From the NCBI GenBank assembly GCA_965240325.2, contig OZ251234.1:1116001-1180000 (forward strand): a stretch of 64,000 nucleotides of DNA, written 5' to 3'. Made by a program: the position numbers and the translations under genes. This DNA is from Rebecca billardiae RCC1528 (Eukaryota > Protista > Haptophyta). Positions 37,338-59,562 of the stretch are shown here, one piece after another. Under the pieces are notes generated by a model. The model was not told the origin of the DNA. It made no database searches and saw nothing but the letters and a program-made list of their open reading frames with translations. The stretch's first letter is position 1, and the number at the start of each line of letters is the position of its first letter.

Positions 37338-40300
37338 TCACGTAAGAAGGAGGATACCATCACCCTCGGCGCTCAGGCGCGCCGACTCACGCGCCGACTC
37401 CTCTTCCGCGCTTCGCTGCACCGCGGGCAGCAGGTCGCGCACGACAGCGTTCACCTGTGGCGCGCCCGCGAGCTCGACCGCGTGGAGGAGCGCGCGCAGC
37501 CCGTCGTCCAAGCGCGACGCGCTCGCCGAGCTGCGCAGCGTGTCCGCCACGTGGAACGCGTCGAAGGCGGCCACCACCCTGCGCCGCTCCTCGTCGGTGC
37601 CGCCGATCACCATCACCTCCACGTCCTGGACCGAGCCGCCCGTCGCGCGCCACGCGAGCAGCCCGCCCACGCACGCGAGCCGCTCGGTGAAGCTCGGTCC
37701 GACGACGCACAGCAGCCGGGCCGAACGGCACATCGCAATCACGCTGTGCTCGAGGGCTTGCTGCCTGTCCAGGCTCGGGTCGGCCGAGATCGCGTCGAGC
37801 CACACGCGCGGCCACTCGCCCGTGAGCGCGTGCTGCCGCCGCGCCCACAGCTGCAGCGCGCGCGCGCGCTGCTTGGGGTCATCCCGGTGCGAGTGGAGGA
37901 TGAACACGCCGATCCGCTCCGGCGCGAGCGAGCGGTCTGCGGTCGGGTCGACCCGGGTGGTCGAGAGACCGCGCGGAAGCACGTGCAGCGAGATGGCGCT
38001 CGGCCTCGCCGCCCTCGTCGCGGAGGGGATGGAGGGCCACGCGAGGAGGCGGCACGCCGAGCGCAGCGGCTGCACGACCAGCGAACGGAGCAGCGGCCGG
38101 AGCCGCCAGCAGCGGCGCGGCTCGGCCGCCGTTGGGGCGGGCAGCTGGACAGCACCGCGGTGCCGGCCGTCGCTCCCGTCGGCCACGGCAGTGGGCAGCT
38201 GCATCGTGCGTAGCGCTTCGGGCGAGAGCTGCGCGCCGCGCAGCGCGCGCAGCTCCTGCGTGACGAGCAGCCGCGGCGCACGCAGCGCGCCCGCGCCGCG
38301 CTCGCCGTGGCCGATCAGCGGCGCCAGGGCCGCGCCCAGCCGGTCGGCCTCGGACACGGCCGCCGAGCCGCACGCCGTGCGCGTGAGCATGGCGTGCGCG
38401 CGCGCGCGCGAGTCTGGCAGTGCGTGCAGCCACAGCAGGGCGACCAGCAGCAGCCAGAAGACGGCGATGGCGGTCAGCATGGCTGCCGAGTCCGCCACGC
38501 CTTGGCGCCGCTCGTCGATGCACCGACCGAAGATGAACGTCGCCGTTGGCAGACTCATGGTCATCACGACCAGCTTCGAAAACCACCAGAGCGCCTCGAT
38601 GCGCAGCGTCTGCGAGGGCACCGGCGCGAGCTTACGAGTGCGAGCCCACACGTGCGCCAGCCCGAGCACGAGGTACACAGCCGCGCAGTTGTGCAGGCCG
38701 AGCCGCACGCCGTTGGCCACGTGCATGGCGTCGGTGGCGGTCGTGCCACAGTACCGGATCGAGCCTGGCTCGGCAGCGAGCATGCGCGGGATGAGCGGCG
38801 TCGAGATCACCACGTTGGTGCAGAAGCCGTGGAGAAGCACCACCGTGTACACGGTCGTGGCGCGCCGGTGCGACTCGGTCGGCTGCAGCGCGAGCGAGAT
38901 GAGCGTGTGCGAGTGCGAAAACATCGCGATCGTCGAGAGGCCCAGCACGCCGCCCCACGCGCCGCGCAGCCTCCCGGTCGATGAGATGAACGCGTACACA
39001 CCAAACCCGAGCACGCTGAGAAGCGTGCCGCTCAGCGCGGCCACGCGCGTCACGTACTCCAGGATCGCGCGCGTCGTGGTCACCGAGCTCTCGAGCAGCG
39101 CGATCATGTGCTCGGGGGAGAGCACGCCGTCGTCGTCGTCCTCGTGGTCGTCGTCGTTCCGCCCGGCTGCCCGCAGGCCGCTCTCGCCGCGGCGCGCCCG
39201 CTCGGCAGACCTCGCGATGTTGGGCATGCCTTGCGACGTGCGCAGCTCGTGCTCGTCGTGCCGCTCGATCATCGACGCGAGCCGGCGCTGGAATGCGCTC
39301 GACGGTGGGCTGCGGCGCGTTGTGCGCTGATGCCGCTCATCTGCGGGGGCAGCCGTGGTCGATGCCGTTGCCCTGACCACATCGTCTGCCACGCAGCGGC
39401 GGCGCGGACGCAGGGGCCGGCAGCGCACGGCGGCGCGGAGCGCGAGGTGAGCCGGCGCGACCACGGCGCGCACGGCGCGTGTCGCGCGCCACGGCGCCGC
39501 GCGCCCGCCCGCCGCGCGCACGATACACGTTGCGCAGCAGCTGCATGACGACCTCGACGTTGACGGAATGCCCGGCGGTCAGGAAGAGCGCGTGCGCCGT
39601 GGCGGGCGTGCGCAGCGTCCTTCGGACATCCGCACGCGGGAGACGCGCAAAGGCCTCCTCGAGCCGCCCGGGCAGAGCGGCCAAGAGCGCGCACACGGCG
39701 TACGGCTTCACAAAGCTGATGAGTGTGATGAGCACCGGGCGGCGAACGCGCACGGCGCGGAGCGCGGGGCAGGCATGCCGATCGGTCAGGCTCGCCATGG
39801 CATACAGTGAGGAGCAGCGCATGTCGGGAGGGCGTGCGCGCGCAGGCGCGCGGCGGAGACGCGAGCGCGAGCGCGGCGCGCACCCGTTCAGGTGCCTGAG
39901 CATGTTCTCATCCGCGCCCAAGCCGTCGAGGCCGCGCGCCTCGAACTCGGCCGCGCCCACGCCGCAGAAGGTCTCAAAGTACCACTGCTTGGTACAGCGC
40001 GCGGGGAGCTTGCCTGTGCACAGCCGCTGCCAGAGGCCCTCGAGCCCGTGGAACTGCGCGTTGGCGAGATATGCCATCAGCTGCGCGGCCAGCGACGCGC
40101 GAGTCGTCGTGCCGTCATTTGCAGCGCAGCCGCGTCAAGACGGCGCGGGCTGGGCTGGCGTGCTGCCCTCCCCGCCAGGCGGGGCATGCTTCATTCACGG
40201 CCGCAGTAGTCGAGAACAGGCGCGCGCGCGCGACAAACTCGTGCGCGCGGCGCGCGCGCGCGTGCGCACGCGCGCGCGTGCGCACCGGTGAGTTCGTGCG

Positions 40301-40945
40301 CTCGGCGAAGGATCGCGCGAGCTGCATCGGCAGCAGCGGCACCGCGTGTCGGCTCACGGCGGTGAGCGGCAGCCCGTACCTGAGGCAGAACTTGTACACG
40401 GCCGCGGCTGCGTCGCGGTCGAGCTCGTTGTTGACGGACGAGTCGGGCTCCCATCTGCTCTTGGCCTCGTCGTACGTAAGCCCGGCCTGCACGACGACGC
40501 GCGCCACCTTGCACAGCACCAGCGCCTGGTCCGCCAAGATGGCGTCCGCCAAGTCGCGCAAGCTCGAGATGCACACGATGTACACCGACCCATTGCTCGC
40601 GGACTCGAGCGTGCTCATCAGAGCGAAAAGGCCATCGGGCTCGAGGCGCCCTCTGTCGACGGCATCGAAGCCCGGCAGAGCGAACTCGTGCGGGGCGGGC
40701 TCCTCCTTCGTCCCTTCGGAGCCCACAGCCACTGGCACGGCGTGCGAGCCGATCGCGTCGAGCAGGCAGCGCGCGAGCTGCGCACGCCGCTCAGCCTGGC
40801 CGCCTCCGTTCGCGATGACGAGCCGCAGGTTCACATCGCCGCGCTTGTGCAGCGTGCCCGCGATGAGGATGGCCTTGGCGTCGTCGGGATCCGGGCCGGG
40901 ATCCGTGATCAGCACGATGTTGCGCGCGCTCTTCGCGGGCCACAT
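37338..40945 (-). CDS. Nucleoside-hydrolase-like + 6TM + TIR-like fusion protein (4 exons)
   Basis: Exons 40945-40286, 40080-39884, 39715-39522, 39385-37338 join in frame through GT-AG introns. IU-NH-like ITDPGPDPDD and NNELDRDAAAAVY; six hydrophobic segments; TIR-like FILHSH...VWLD...LLCVVGPSFTERLAC. Confidence 0.75.
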
Positions 40946-59100: not shown

Positions 59101-59562
59101 GTAGGTGGCGGCGTCGACGTACACGACGCGGCGCGCCGTGCAGTACGGCGCGCGCATCGACGTCTGCAGCACCTCGGAGAGCAGGCCGGAGAGAACGATC
59201 ACAAACAGCAGCAGCCCGCCGTTCCAGAAGACGGACAGGCCGACGATCAGCCGCATGTCCGTCGGGCGCAGCGCCATGAGCAGGAAGGGCACCGCGGAGA
59301 CGCCCATGTGGAAGCCGACGTAGAACAGCGGCGTGCCCCACGGGTTGGTGACGAAGAGGACGAGGCCGATCGAGCAGAACGTCACGCCGATCGCGAGCGG
59401 CGGCCCGGAGACGAGCAATCGGTAGCGCCGGCCGGCGCTGGCCGCGCTGAAGAGCGTGAGCTCGATGCGTCCCAGGTCGAGGTCATCGGCGGCAGTGGGC
59501 TCAAAGGTGGCGGTGGAGCGCAGTCGCTCGCGGCGCGGCGGCCCCCAGAACCGGCTCATCAT
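56157..59562 (-). CDS. 6TM + TIR-like + TM + C-type lectin receptor-like protein (3 exons)
   Basis: Exons 59562-58408, 58018-57788, 57584-56157 in frame. TIR-like DAFISHS|WHD...VWFDRACL...LPVFLAGCRRLVILAGPTYIERLWCIIELF; late TM; CTLD with C..EGAHLVRI, WIGL, WAPSQPD, WYDEQC, YVCE. Confidence 0.85.

Follow-up and report, generated by a model that had tools for sequence, protein, structure and literature searches.

Sequence and profile comparisons indicate that the nucleoside-hydrolase domain fused to a TIR domain in gene A of the haptophyte Rebecca billardiae RCC1528 is XopQ/HopQ1-like, a kinship that would tie it functionally to TIR signaling, and that gene A belongs, together with gene B, to a family that is very large yet barely annotated. 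On balance, we consider it probable that, within this single protist family, gene B encodes a lectin-bearing, NAD-consuming TIR receptor while gene A is a copy from a subfamily, founded by a single fusion, in which a XopQ-like domain processes the TIR nucleotide. Both genes lie on the minus strand of the window, i.e. the whole 64,000-nt stretch analyzed (GCA_965240325.2, contig OZ251234.1, 1,116,001-1,180,000), and all positions are window coordinates:

40993-40286, 40080-39884, 39715-39522, 39340-37341, minus: gene A model, four exons, 3099 nt = 1033 codons, in frame
40286-40993, minus: gene A exon 1, predicted N-terminal XopQ/HopQ1-like nucleoside-hydrolase domain (Pfam PF01156 and nearest solved relatives)
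40945, minus: alternative possible ATG of gene A
40880-40906, minus: modified calcium motif TDPGPDPDD of gene A
39884-40080, minus: gene A exon 2, central part of the hydrolase domain (tblastn with the intron-less paralogs L048 and L046, 70% identity; splice sites read)
39522-39715, minus: gene A exon 3, closing part of the hydrolase domain, with the VKPYAV motif
38418-39035, minus: gene A six-helix membrane scaffold, within exon 4 (39340-37341), from hhalign against the canonical scaffold
37376-37922, minus: TIR-fold domain of gene A; the catalytic-Glu position (37662-37664) is occupied by Gly
37338-37340, minus: gene A stop codon
42111-46229, minus: TANGO6/RTP1-like gene between A and B (Pfam)
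46268-48424, plus: ABC1 kinase gene between A and B (Pfam)
50976-53306, minus: HSP90-family gene between A and B (Pfam)
59562-58408, 58018-57788, 57584-56160, minus: gene B model, three exons, 937 codons
58408-59562, minus: gene B exon 1, with the N-terminus, six-helix scaffold (~58666-59397), juxtamembrane helices and first TIR strand
57788-58018, minus: gene B exon 2, encoding WFDRACLDQ and RLWCIIELF of the TIR core (catalytic-position Glu within 57788-57796)
56160-57584, minus: gene B exon 3, with the C-terminal half of the TIR, linker, seventh membrane helix and C-type lectin
57225-57251, minus: gene B TIR tail motif
56670-56744, minus: gene B seventh membrane helix
~56198-56534, minus: gene B C-type lectin domain (QPD at 56304-56312; Pfam Lectin_C E 2e-8)

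All introns of gene A run from a GTGCGC donor to a CAG acceptor, and a GTGCGC donor was also read at the end of gene B exon 1, which closes on FISHS; this exon matched the scaffold HMM at E 6.3e-43, and its AlphaFold2 model had a pLDDT of 83.4. The order of parts in gene B recurs within one 1081-aa ORF of the intron-less paralog L031. Queries in the homology searches were single exons or intron-less paralogs, not the joined spliced A and B proteins.

An earlier first-pass annotation had proposed that A and B share a core, quoting 14 peptide motifs, all of which were found on the minus strand where it had placed them. Among these, LALQPTE/MALRPTD after TM2 and LRIEALW/LLDRLW before TM5 (A/B) are scaffold motifs that hhalign pairs exactly. 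Significant alignment of the two cores, a point set beforehand, was obtained both pairwise (BLASTP E 7e-7) and by profile, with the gene A core matching an HMM built solely from 20 non-hydrolase relatives at E 1.4e-14. The membrane scaffolds gave only E 0.005 and 0.11 when compared pairwise; the profile-profile comparison reached a probability of 97.3% and E 2e-11 over 246 columns, in register with the motifs first noticed. Judged by these alignments, the likeness of A to B exceeds chance. The six-helix domain had no specific match in PDB or ESM Atlas, and the family defines a membrane domain without known fold, consistently coupled to TIR.

A profile scan of this genome and of public data, in which appended domains and Glu status were tabulated, bore out the idea of a large, diversified family with receptor-like architecture: we counted at least 140 loci (about 140) in the 72-Mb genome, and public data hold 5,702 clusters, coral-symbiont members among them, so that the family is far from tiny, another point set beforehand. 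Both types of appended domain recur (N-terminal hydrolase at 55 loci, lectin at 15), and Glu status varies. The description of these domains as modular and swappable thus holds in that both appendages recur, but swapping was overstated for the hydrolase. In the tree, a single branch (SH-aLRT 99) keeps the 46 sampled hydrolase-linked cores all together on one side, which indicates that the hydrolase fusion arose once and then radiated, an expansion that would have taken place in pavlovophyte-type haptophytes. A word search with the large exon of gene A had no match, a result of little weight as the gene is divergent.

The N-terminal hydrolase previously assigned to gene A was recovered by Pfam IU_nuc_hydro (PF01156) on exon 1 (39.9 bits vs. 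a cut-off of 34.2, E 5.2e-10). Its nearest solved relatives are the XopQ/HopQ1 effectors (XopQ 7JLU, chain B, E 3.9e-12; 4P5F and 4KL0, 5.6e-12), with the canonical hydrolase 1ezr reaching only E 0.076, and the paralog L048 can be aligned to XopQ over 269 residues. The calcium motif TDPGPDPDD of gene A resembles TDPNKDPDD of XopQ, the common form being T-D-P-x-x-D-P-D-D. These comparisons identify the domain as XopQ/HopQ1-like rather than a generic nucleoside hydrolase, an identity overlooked in the first-pass annotation and, we believe, the main addition made here. Bacteria secrete XopQ as a soluble effector directed against host TIR signals, whereas the gene A domain would be endogenous and cytosolic, joined in one protein to a membrane domain and a TIR. 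Cleavage of the TIR product 2'cADPR to ADP-ribose by XopQ has been reported in a June 2026 preprint, with this activity known only for bacterial enzymes (bioRxiv 10.64898/2026.06.15.732069), and XopQ homologues were inactive on ordinary nucleosides. Piechocki et al. 2018 (PMC6019455) had already pointed out HopQ1-like proteins in algae and had also described the modified calcium site that sets the HopQ1-type group apart from canonical enzymes; TIR or transmembrane fusions are not mentioned in that paper (0 occurrences), and we found no description in the literature of a TIR fused to a TIR-signal hydrolase.

The hydrolase-6TM-TIR fusion is real, being present in single ORFs of 1000-1600 aa, in complete transcripts of Pavlova gyrans and other MMETSP samples, and in proteins of Diacronema lutheri and Pavlovales CCMP2436. 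Recognizing that XopQ is reported to cleave 2'cADPR, we infer that the fused hydrolase handles a nucleotide made by TIRs. Coming from an independent lineage, the fusion provides a "Rosetta stone" argument suggesting that this class of hydrolase acts on TIR products, and its recurrence also suggests that haptophytes use 2'cADPR-like signals.

Gene A itself, in comparison with its relatives, has lost residues in both domains. In the alpha-C helix of the TIR (W-C-x-x-E), the catalytic Glu is present in gene B (RLWCIIELF) and replaced by Gly in gene A (RLACVGGLL), as had been noticed from the sequence at the outset. In the hydrolase, XopQ is inactivated by mutation of two conserved aspartates, D120 and D399. 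The D120 equivalent is present in gene A, while the VKPYAV motif of exon 3 has Ala (GCC, 39697-39699), aligned to the Tyr-Asp of XopQ, where nearly all relatives have Asp. This putative D399 position, whose equivalence rests on alignment and numbering offset rather than structure, is Ala in gene A and L045, Asp in L044 and 17 of 18 other paralogs checked (Gly in L054), and Asp in all public homologues showing the motif. Gene A therefore has a probable loss of the catalytic Asp of the hydrolase, also overlooked initially. With the TIR Glu and this Asp gone, gene A is probably a non-catalytic, regulatory or decaying copy.

The reading that survives best beside our own is that gene A is simply a duplicate in decay, on its way to becoming an unprocessed pseudogene and serving no function by itself, which we regard as possible, though clearly not the favored account. 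It is prompted by dN/dS values of 0.78 (vs. L044) and 0.97 (vs. L045), so that gene A is almost neutrally evolving relative to its two closest copies, as well as by the double loss just described; in addition, open frames are weak evidence of constraint at 70% G+C. Set against this, none of the four exons is disrupted or out of frame and their splice sites follow the consensus, the TIR part is the best-conserved part of gene A, and the Glu-less state is common to a supported clade of 11 genes that retains the replacement motif VGRLLAWRA-S/T-GG despite saturated synonymous divergence. Active and dead variants occurring naturally within one family are, in our opinion, testable candidates.

The family at large shares a plan of a six-helix membrane domain followed by a cytosolic plant-like TIR, with a putative immune role. 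In the hydrolase-bearing subfamily, the XopQ/HopQ1-like domain at the cytosolic N-terminus would share its side of the membrane with the TIR and would bind or hydrolyze nucleotide from linked or neighboring TIRs, thus providing built-in signal processing or termination. A bolder version, which we hold to be rather unlikely, depicts the hydrolase-6TM-TIR protein as a self-contained second-messenger device in which the TIR would make a cADPR isomer, the XopQ-like domain would sense or cleave it in cis, and the six-helix domain would serve as output, e.g. as a pore or channel in the manner of TRPM2. The likeness to TRPM2, which carries an ADP-ribose-type ligand-binding cytosolic domain (NUDT9-homology) on a six-helix membrane domain, is one of analogy only, with no sequence or fold similarity. 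The logic is also that of bacterial Thoeris, where the nucleotide signal produced by a TIR is recognized by a second module; in Thoeris, however, these are separate proteins, with SLOG/Macro sensor domains for cADPR isomers, whereas the window family unites the two modules in a single eukaryotic membrane protein, the second being of hydrolase type. Were the device version true, the 2'cADPR hydrolase activity that plant pathogens employ would represent an ancient, endogenous means of regulating TIR signaling, and copies dead in both domains, gene A among them, would be ligand-binding regulators or decoys. Degeneration within the family is greatest among the hydrolase-linked TIRs, which have often lost Trp and Glu; this would fit a role in binding or regulation no less well than a module of producer plus hydrolase.

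The "TIR core" proposed earlier proved to be a genuine TIR fold by structure modeling, but Pfam assigned no TIR to either gene. The modeled domain (pLDDT 90.9, pTM 0.85) has the flavodoxin-like five-strand alpha/beta TIR fold, and the top 50 Foldseek matches to it were all TIR domains; the best structural matches were enzymatic plant TIRs, AbTir, SARM1 and SPARTA. Based on this model, the core of both genes is a plant-TIR-like TIR fold. Pfam TIR or TIR_2 was not detected in gene A, gene B (all exon pieces) or L031 even at E up to 10; TIR_2 was reached weakly by 6 of 49 public relatives (best 4.6e-5), and a Cladocopium family member is labeled "TIR domain-containing protein" in UniRef. Pfam TIR_2 (PF13676) matches 18 other places in the genome and none of the loci of the 6TM-TIR family, which adds at least 140 further TIR loci as a hidden repertoire. 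The fungal HET domain (PF06985) has similar motifs (W-x-D-x-x-C-I-x-Q, R-x-W-x-x-x-E), yet no HET match was seen in the window genes, L031 or the 49 relatives.

Enzymatic function of this TIR is suggested by conservation. RLWCxxE is kept in 141 of 142 top public representatives, Glu is kept in all canonical copies of this genome whose alignment row reaches the position, and gene B, by alignment, has every invariant TIR residue of the family, including the catalytic-position Glu. The conserved Glu is present in non-enzymatic animal TIRs too, and its conservation is for that reason no proof of NADase activity. One might accordingly regard the domain as a mere adaptor or scaffold in the manner of animal TLRs, with the hydrolase engaged in ordinary nucleoside salvage; the PDB sequence profile search, which otherwise speaks for the TIR fold, returned only TLR15/TLR2 and SIGIRR TIRs (both motifs in register), and the Pfam class of the hydrolase is that of inosine-uridine nucleoside hydrolases. 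We deem this unlikely, given the enzymatic TIRs among the best structural matches, some 15 pocket residues that are near-invariant over thousands of clusters, which suggests catalysis, a calcium site distinct from that of canonical enzymes (PMC6019455), the inactivity of XopQ homologues on ordinary nucleosides, and the difficulty of explaining a salvage enzyme joined 55 times to a membrane TIR.

Gene B is a canonical family member in which, on our preferred reading, an extra seventh helix would place the C-type lectin outside the cell. Most likely a surface receptor, it would bind ligand via the lectin, leading to TIR clustering and NAD-consuming TIR signaling. The C-terminal lectin was confirmed by Pfam Lectin_C on exon 3 (35.4 bits vs. 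a cut-off of 22.6, E 2e-8). Sugar binding is uncertain because WYD replaces WND, despite the presence of QPD; the lectin of L031 has EPS and lacks WND.

NAD-derived nucleotide signaling by TIRs is established in bacteria, plants and animals, and in microalgae a link of TIR signaling to virus resistance is only just emerging. In comparison with plant TIRs (RPP1, RUN1, RPS4, RPPT-TIR), to which the window family has ~10% sequence identity, its members lack NB-ARC or LRR, have the TIR attached to a six-pass membrane domain, display invariant motifs of their own (F-x-S-H-S-W-x-D, W-x-D-x-x-C-I-D-Q) and, in the case of A and B, escape the Pfam TIR models. Closer to home, TIR genes of Gephyrocapsa (Emiliania) huxleyi have been linked to virus resistance and proposed as antiviral immunity genes (New Phytol 2025, PMC12489294); as in the window, these are haptophyte TIRs, some membrane-bound, with a conserved Glu. 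They were defined by HHsuite matches to Pfam TIR families and reported without additional domains, and the accessible portion of that account describes no six-helix scaffold, hydrolase fusion or lectin fusion.

As to the proximity of A and B, paired TIR receptors of the RRS1/RPS4 type are adjacent, usually head-to-head and co-inherited, and hetero-oligomers of TIR domains are common. The proposal that Glu-less A and Glu-intact B cooperate as one locus, as a sensor/executor or inhibitor pair like those plant receptors, did not hold up and is highly improbable: one intact and one dead copy do lie within 22 kb on the same strand, but 16 kb and three unrelated housekeeping genes separate them, they belong to distant branches of the family tree and show no recurrent co-location (of the 15 lectin-type genes, just 1 has a hydrolase-type neighbor within 25 kb), and when 72 Mb contain 140 or more loci, it is not rare for two to be within 20 kb by chance. 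Across the genome, ~80 loci carry the hydrolase domain, at 55 of which the TIR core follows 2-6 kb downstream in the same orientation, and the ~25 without TIR lie within long ORFs of ~2000 aa.

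The most informative new point of this analysis is that a XopQ-like hydrolase domain, putatively enzymatic and directed at a TIR signal, is fused to TIRs in a eukaryote. The hydrolase-6TM-TIR gene (gene A) and the 6TM-TIR-lectin gene (gene B) lie in DNA of about 70% G+C, with spliceosomal introns and a recurring GTGCGC donor, in an assembly of 72 Mb and 41 contigs. All 14 peptide motifs quoted in the first-pass annotation were recovered in place on the minus strand. The gene A model was guided by intron-less paralogs and by splice sites read in the sequence, and all searches took single exons or intron-less paralogs as queries; in the intron-less paralog L031 the parts are ordered as in gene B within one 1081-aa ORF.

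40993-40286, minus strand, gene A exon 1
40080-39884, minus strand, gene A exon 2
39715-39522, minus strand, gene A exon 3
39340-37341, minus strand, gene A exon 4 (sum 1033 codons, in frame)
59562-58408, minus strand, gene B exon 1
58019-58407, minus strand, gene B first intron (gene model)
58018-57788, minus strand, gene B exon 2
57585-57787, minus strand, gene B second intron (gene model)
57584-56160, minus strand, gene B exon 3 (937 codons in all)

The scaffold first proposed to be common to both genes is real. Their TIR-fold cores align pairwise at E 7e-7, and the gene A core matches, over the full model length, an HMM built solely from 20 non-hydrolase relatives (E 1.4e-14). Pairwise alignment of the membrane parts is weak (E 0.005 and 0.11); profile-profile comparison of the hydrolase-type scaffold with that of canonical members gave a probability of 97.3% (E 2e-11, 246 columns). 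The originally quoted motifs line up in it: the P-T-E/D turn that follows helix 2, the L-W preceding helix 5, and, behind helix 6, P-x-x-R-x-R-x-H-x-x-L and A-A-x-x-A-x-L. Tail motifs are likewise conserved family-wide. A model of gene B exon 1 displayed six long bundled helices plus juxtamembrane helices (pLDDT 83.4); since this membrane domain had no specific match in PDB (Foldseek, full VIA scan) or the ESM Atlas, we name no fold for it and claim no novelty.

Pfam reported no TIR in gene A, gene B or L031. The core is a divergent TIR, as evidenced by: 1) the core profile found two matches only among all PDB sequences, both TIRs (TLR15/TLR2, E 0.06; SIGIRR) with both conserved motifs in register; 2) the AlphaFold2 model of the gene A core (38-row alignment) reached pLDDT 90.9 and pTM 0.85; 3) Pfam TIR_2 was reached by 6 of 49 public relatives (best 4.6e-5); 4) a Cladocopium member is named 'TIR domain-containing protein' in UniRef. 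The Glu of R-L-W-C-x-x-E aligns with that of the TLR W-C-x-x-E-L motif, the catalytic position in enzymatic TIRs; gene B has this Glu and gene A has Gly.

Scanning the genome and public proteins with the core profile, as had been proposed at the outset, yielded 163 matches in this genome, or at least about 140 loci with split exons merged (a lower bound, since 150 of 354 candidates were scored), and 5,702 public clusters (50% identity) at E <=0.001, with 1,245 at <=1e-30. Pfam TIR_2 marked 18 places in the genome, none at loci of this family. Named sources are Diacronema lutheri, Pavlovales sp. CCMP2436, Pavlova gyrans, Emiliania huxleyi, Symbiodinium and Cladocopium, with best identities of 35-57%; the window probably belongs to a pavlovophyte-type haptophyte different from all of them. 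R-L-W-C-x-x-E was kept in 141 of 142 newly returned proteins within the top 150, and public members are mostly 450-650 aa, the size of scaffold plus TIR; one of the 49 scanned carries a lectin and one LRRs. Pfam Lectin_C occurs at 37 places in the genome, 15 of which follow a core immediately and in the same orientation, and Pfam found no further domain besides lectin in ten other long members.

The closest PDB matches of gene A exon 1 were to XopQ of Xanthomonas (7jlu_B, E 3.9e-12; 4p5f and 4kl0, 5.6e-12), with canonical nucleoside hydrolases at 0.076 or worse, and paralog L048 aligned with XopQ over 269 residues. The algal T-D-P-G-P-D-P-D-D corresponds to T-D-P-N-K-D-P-D-D in XopQ; this motif is the modified calcium site by which the HopQ1-like group is defined. 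A preprint, in which eukaryotic homologues are not a topic, reports that XopQ cleaves the TIR product 2'cADPR to ADP-ribose (bioRxiv 10.64898/2026.06.15.732069); Piechocki et al. (2018; PMC6019455) noted HopQ1-like proteins in algae, leaving TIR and transmembrane parts unmentioned. Our literature search, of incomplete journal coverage, found no paper on a XopQ-like hydrolase-TIR fusion. The fusion lies within single ORFs of 1000-1600 aa, is also present in complete Pavlova gyrans transcripts and in Diacronema and Pavlovales proteins, and both parts occur in about 38 of 48 homologues. With the gene A hydrolase domain as query, 114 genomic matches (about 80 loci) were obtained; at 55 of these loci, coordinate comparison placed a same-strand TIR core 2-6 kb downstream. 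As six helices separate them, hydrolase and TIR are on the same side of the membrane, presumably the cytosolic one. About 25 XopQ-like loci lie in long ORFs (~1800-2400 aa) with the 6TM-TIR core not nearby (e.g. C7:1392234, C12:2177584, C27:158079, C23:525097, C15:880740, C16:1320945 and C1:4195324), so the hydrolase module has other partners.

The first-pass annotation regarded the appended domains as swappable. When 96 cores were placed on a tree, the 46 linked to a hydrolase all fell on one side of one branch (SH-aLRT 99); the hydrolase was thus fused once, with radiation of the fusion afterwards, and not exchanged repeatedly. The lectin label is scattered on this tree, whose 111 columns resolve too poorly for counting gains. 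P0048, a public protein (947 aa, Logan assembly), has the reverse order, a canonical TIR core at 267-428 and a XopQ-like domain from ~484, reflecting either a second independent association or neighbouring genes fused by the gene caller.

Together with ten other Glu-less genes of this genome, gene A forms a supported clade of 11 (SH-aLRT 97). The Glu is kept in 7 and lost in 14 of the hydrolase-type TIRs sampled here, kept in about 20 and lost in 6 public ones, and kept in all canonical copies of this genome whose alignment row reaches the position. Gene A retains the equivalent of XopQ D120. The Asp of V-K-P-Y-D-V, placed at D399 by an alignment whose numbering offset is consistent, is conserved in paralog L044, in 17 of 18 other paralogs checked and in all public homologues showing the motif; it is Gly in L054 and Ala in gene A (GCC, 39697-39699) and its close copy L045. 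L044 (C7:2744500-2752500) and L045 (C1:1211500-1219500), with cores 92-94% identical and located on other contigs, are recent dispersed duplications of gene A. The dN/dS of gene A (0.78 vs. L044, 0.97 vs. L045) is that of near neutrality or diversification; dS in the TIR part (0.03-0.05) is far below that in the membrane part (0.16), which hints at gene conversion.

Genes A and B had also been proposed as a possible working pair. Three housekeeping genes intervene:

42111-46229, minus strand, TANGO6/RTP1-like
46268-48424, plus strand, ABC1 atypical kinase
50976-53306, minus strand, HSP90-family protein

Of the 15 lectin-type genes, gene B alone lies within 25 kb of a hydrolase-type gene. The idea of a pair finds no support. 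Overall, the initial observation holds, its reading as a receptor family is largely right, and enzymatic and immune roles of the family are putative.

The gene B intron immediately behind the F-x-S-H-S strand is phase 0 and kept in many paralogs (L003, L005-L012 and others); a second, after R-L-W, occurs in other paralogs (L013, L017, L018, L022 and L024). A short G-rich tandem repeat lies inside the first intron of gene B. On the opposite strand, 130 bp upstream of the gene B start codon, begins a 764-aa ORF (59691-61982, plus strand) that weakly matches RNase H (E 1.8e-5, slightly below the Pfam cut-off) and may be a retroelement remnant. Upstream of the lectin-type gene of L031, a long near-identical repeat array, open in several frames, occupies L031 1-1884 (C11:1548000-1549884); downstream of the gene, around L031 7400-7534, there is a microsatellite of (TA)n type.
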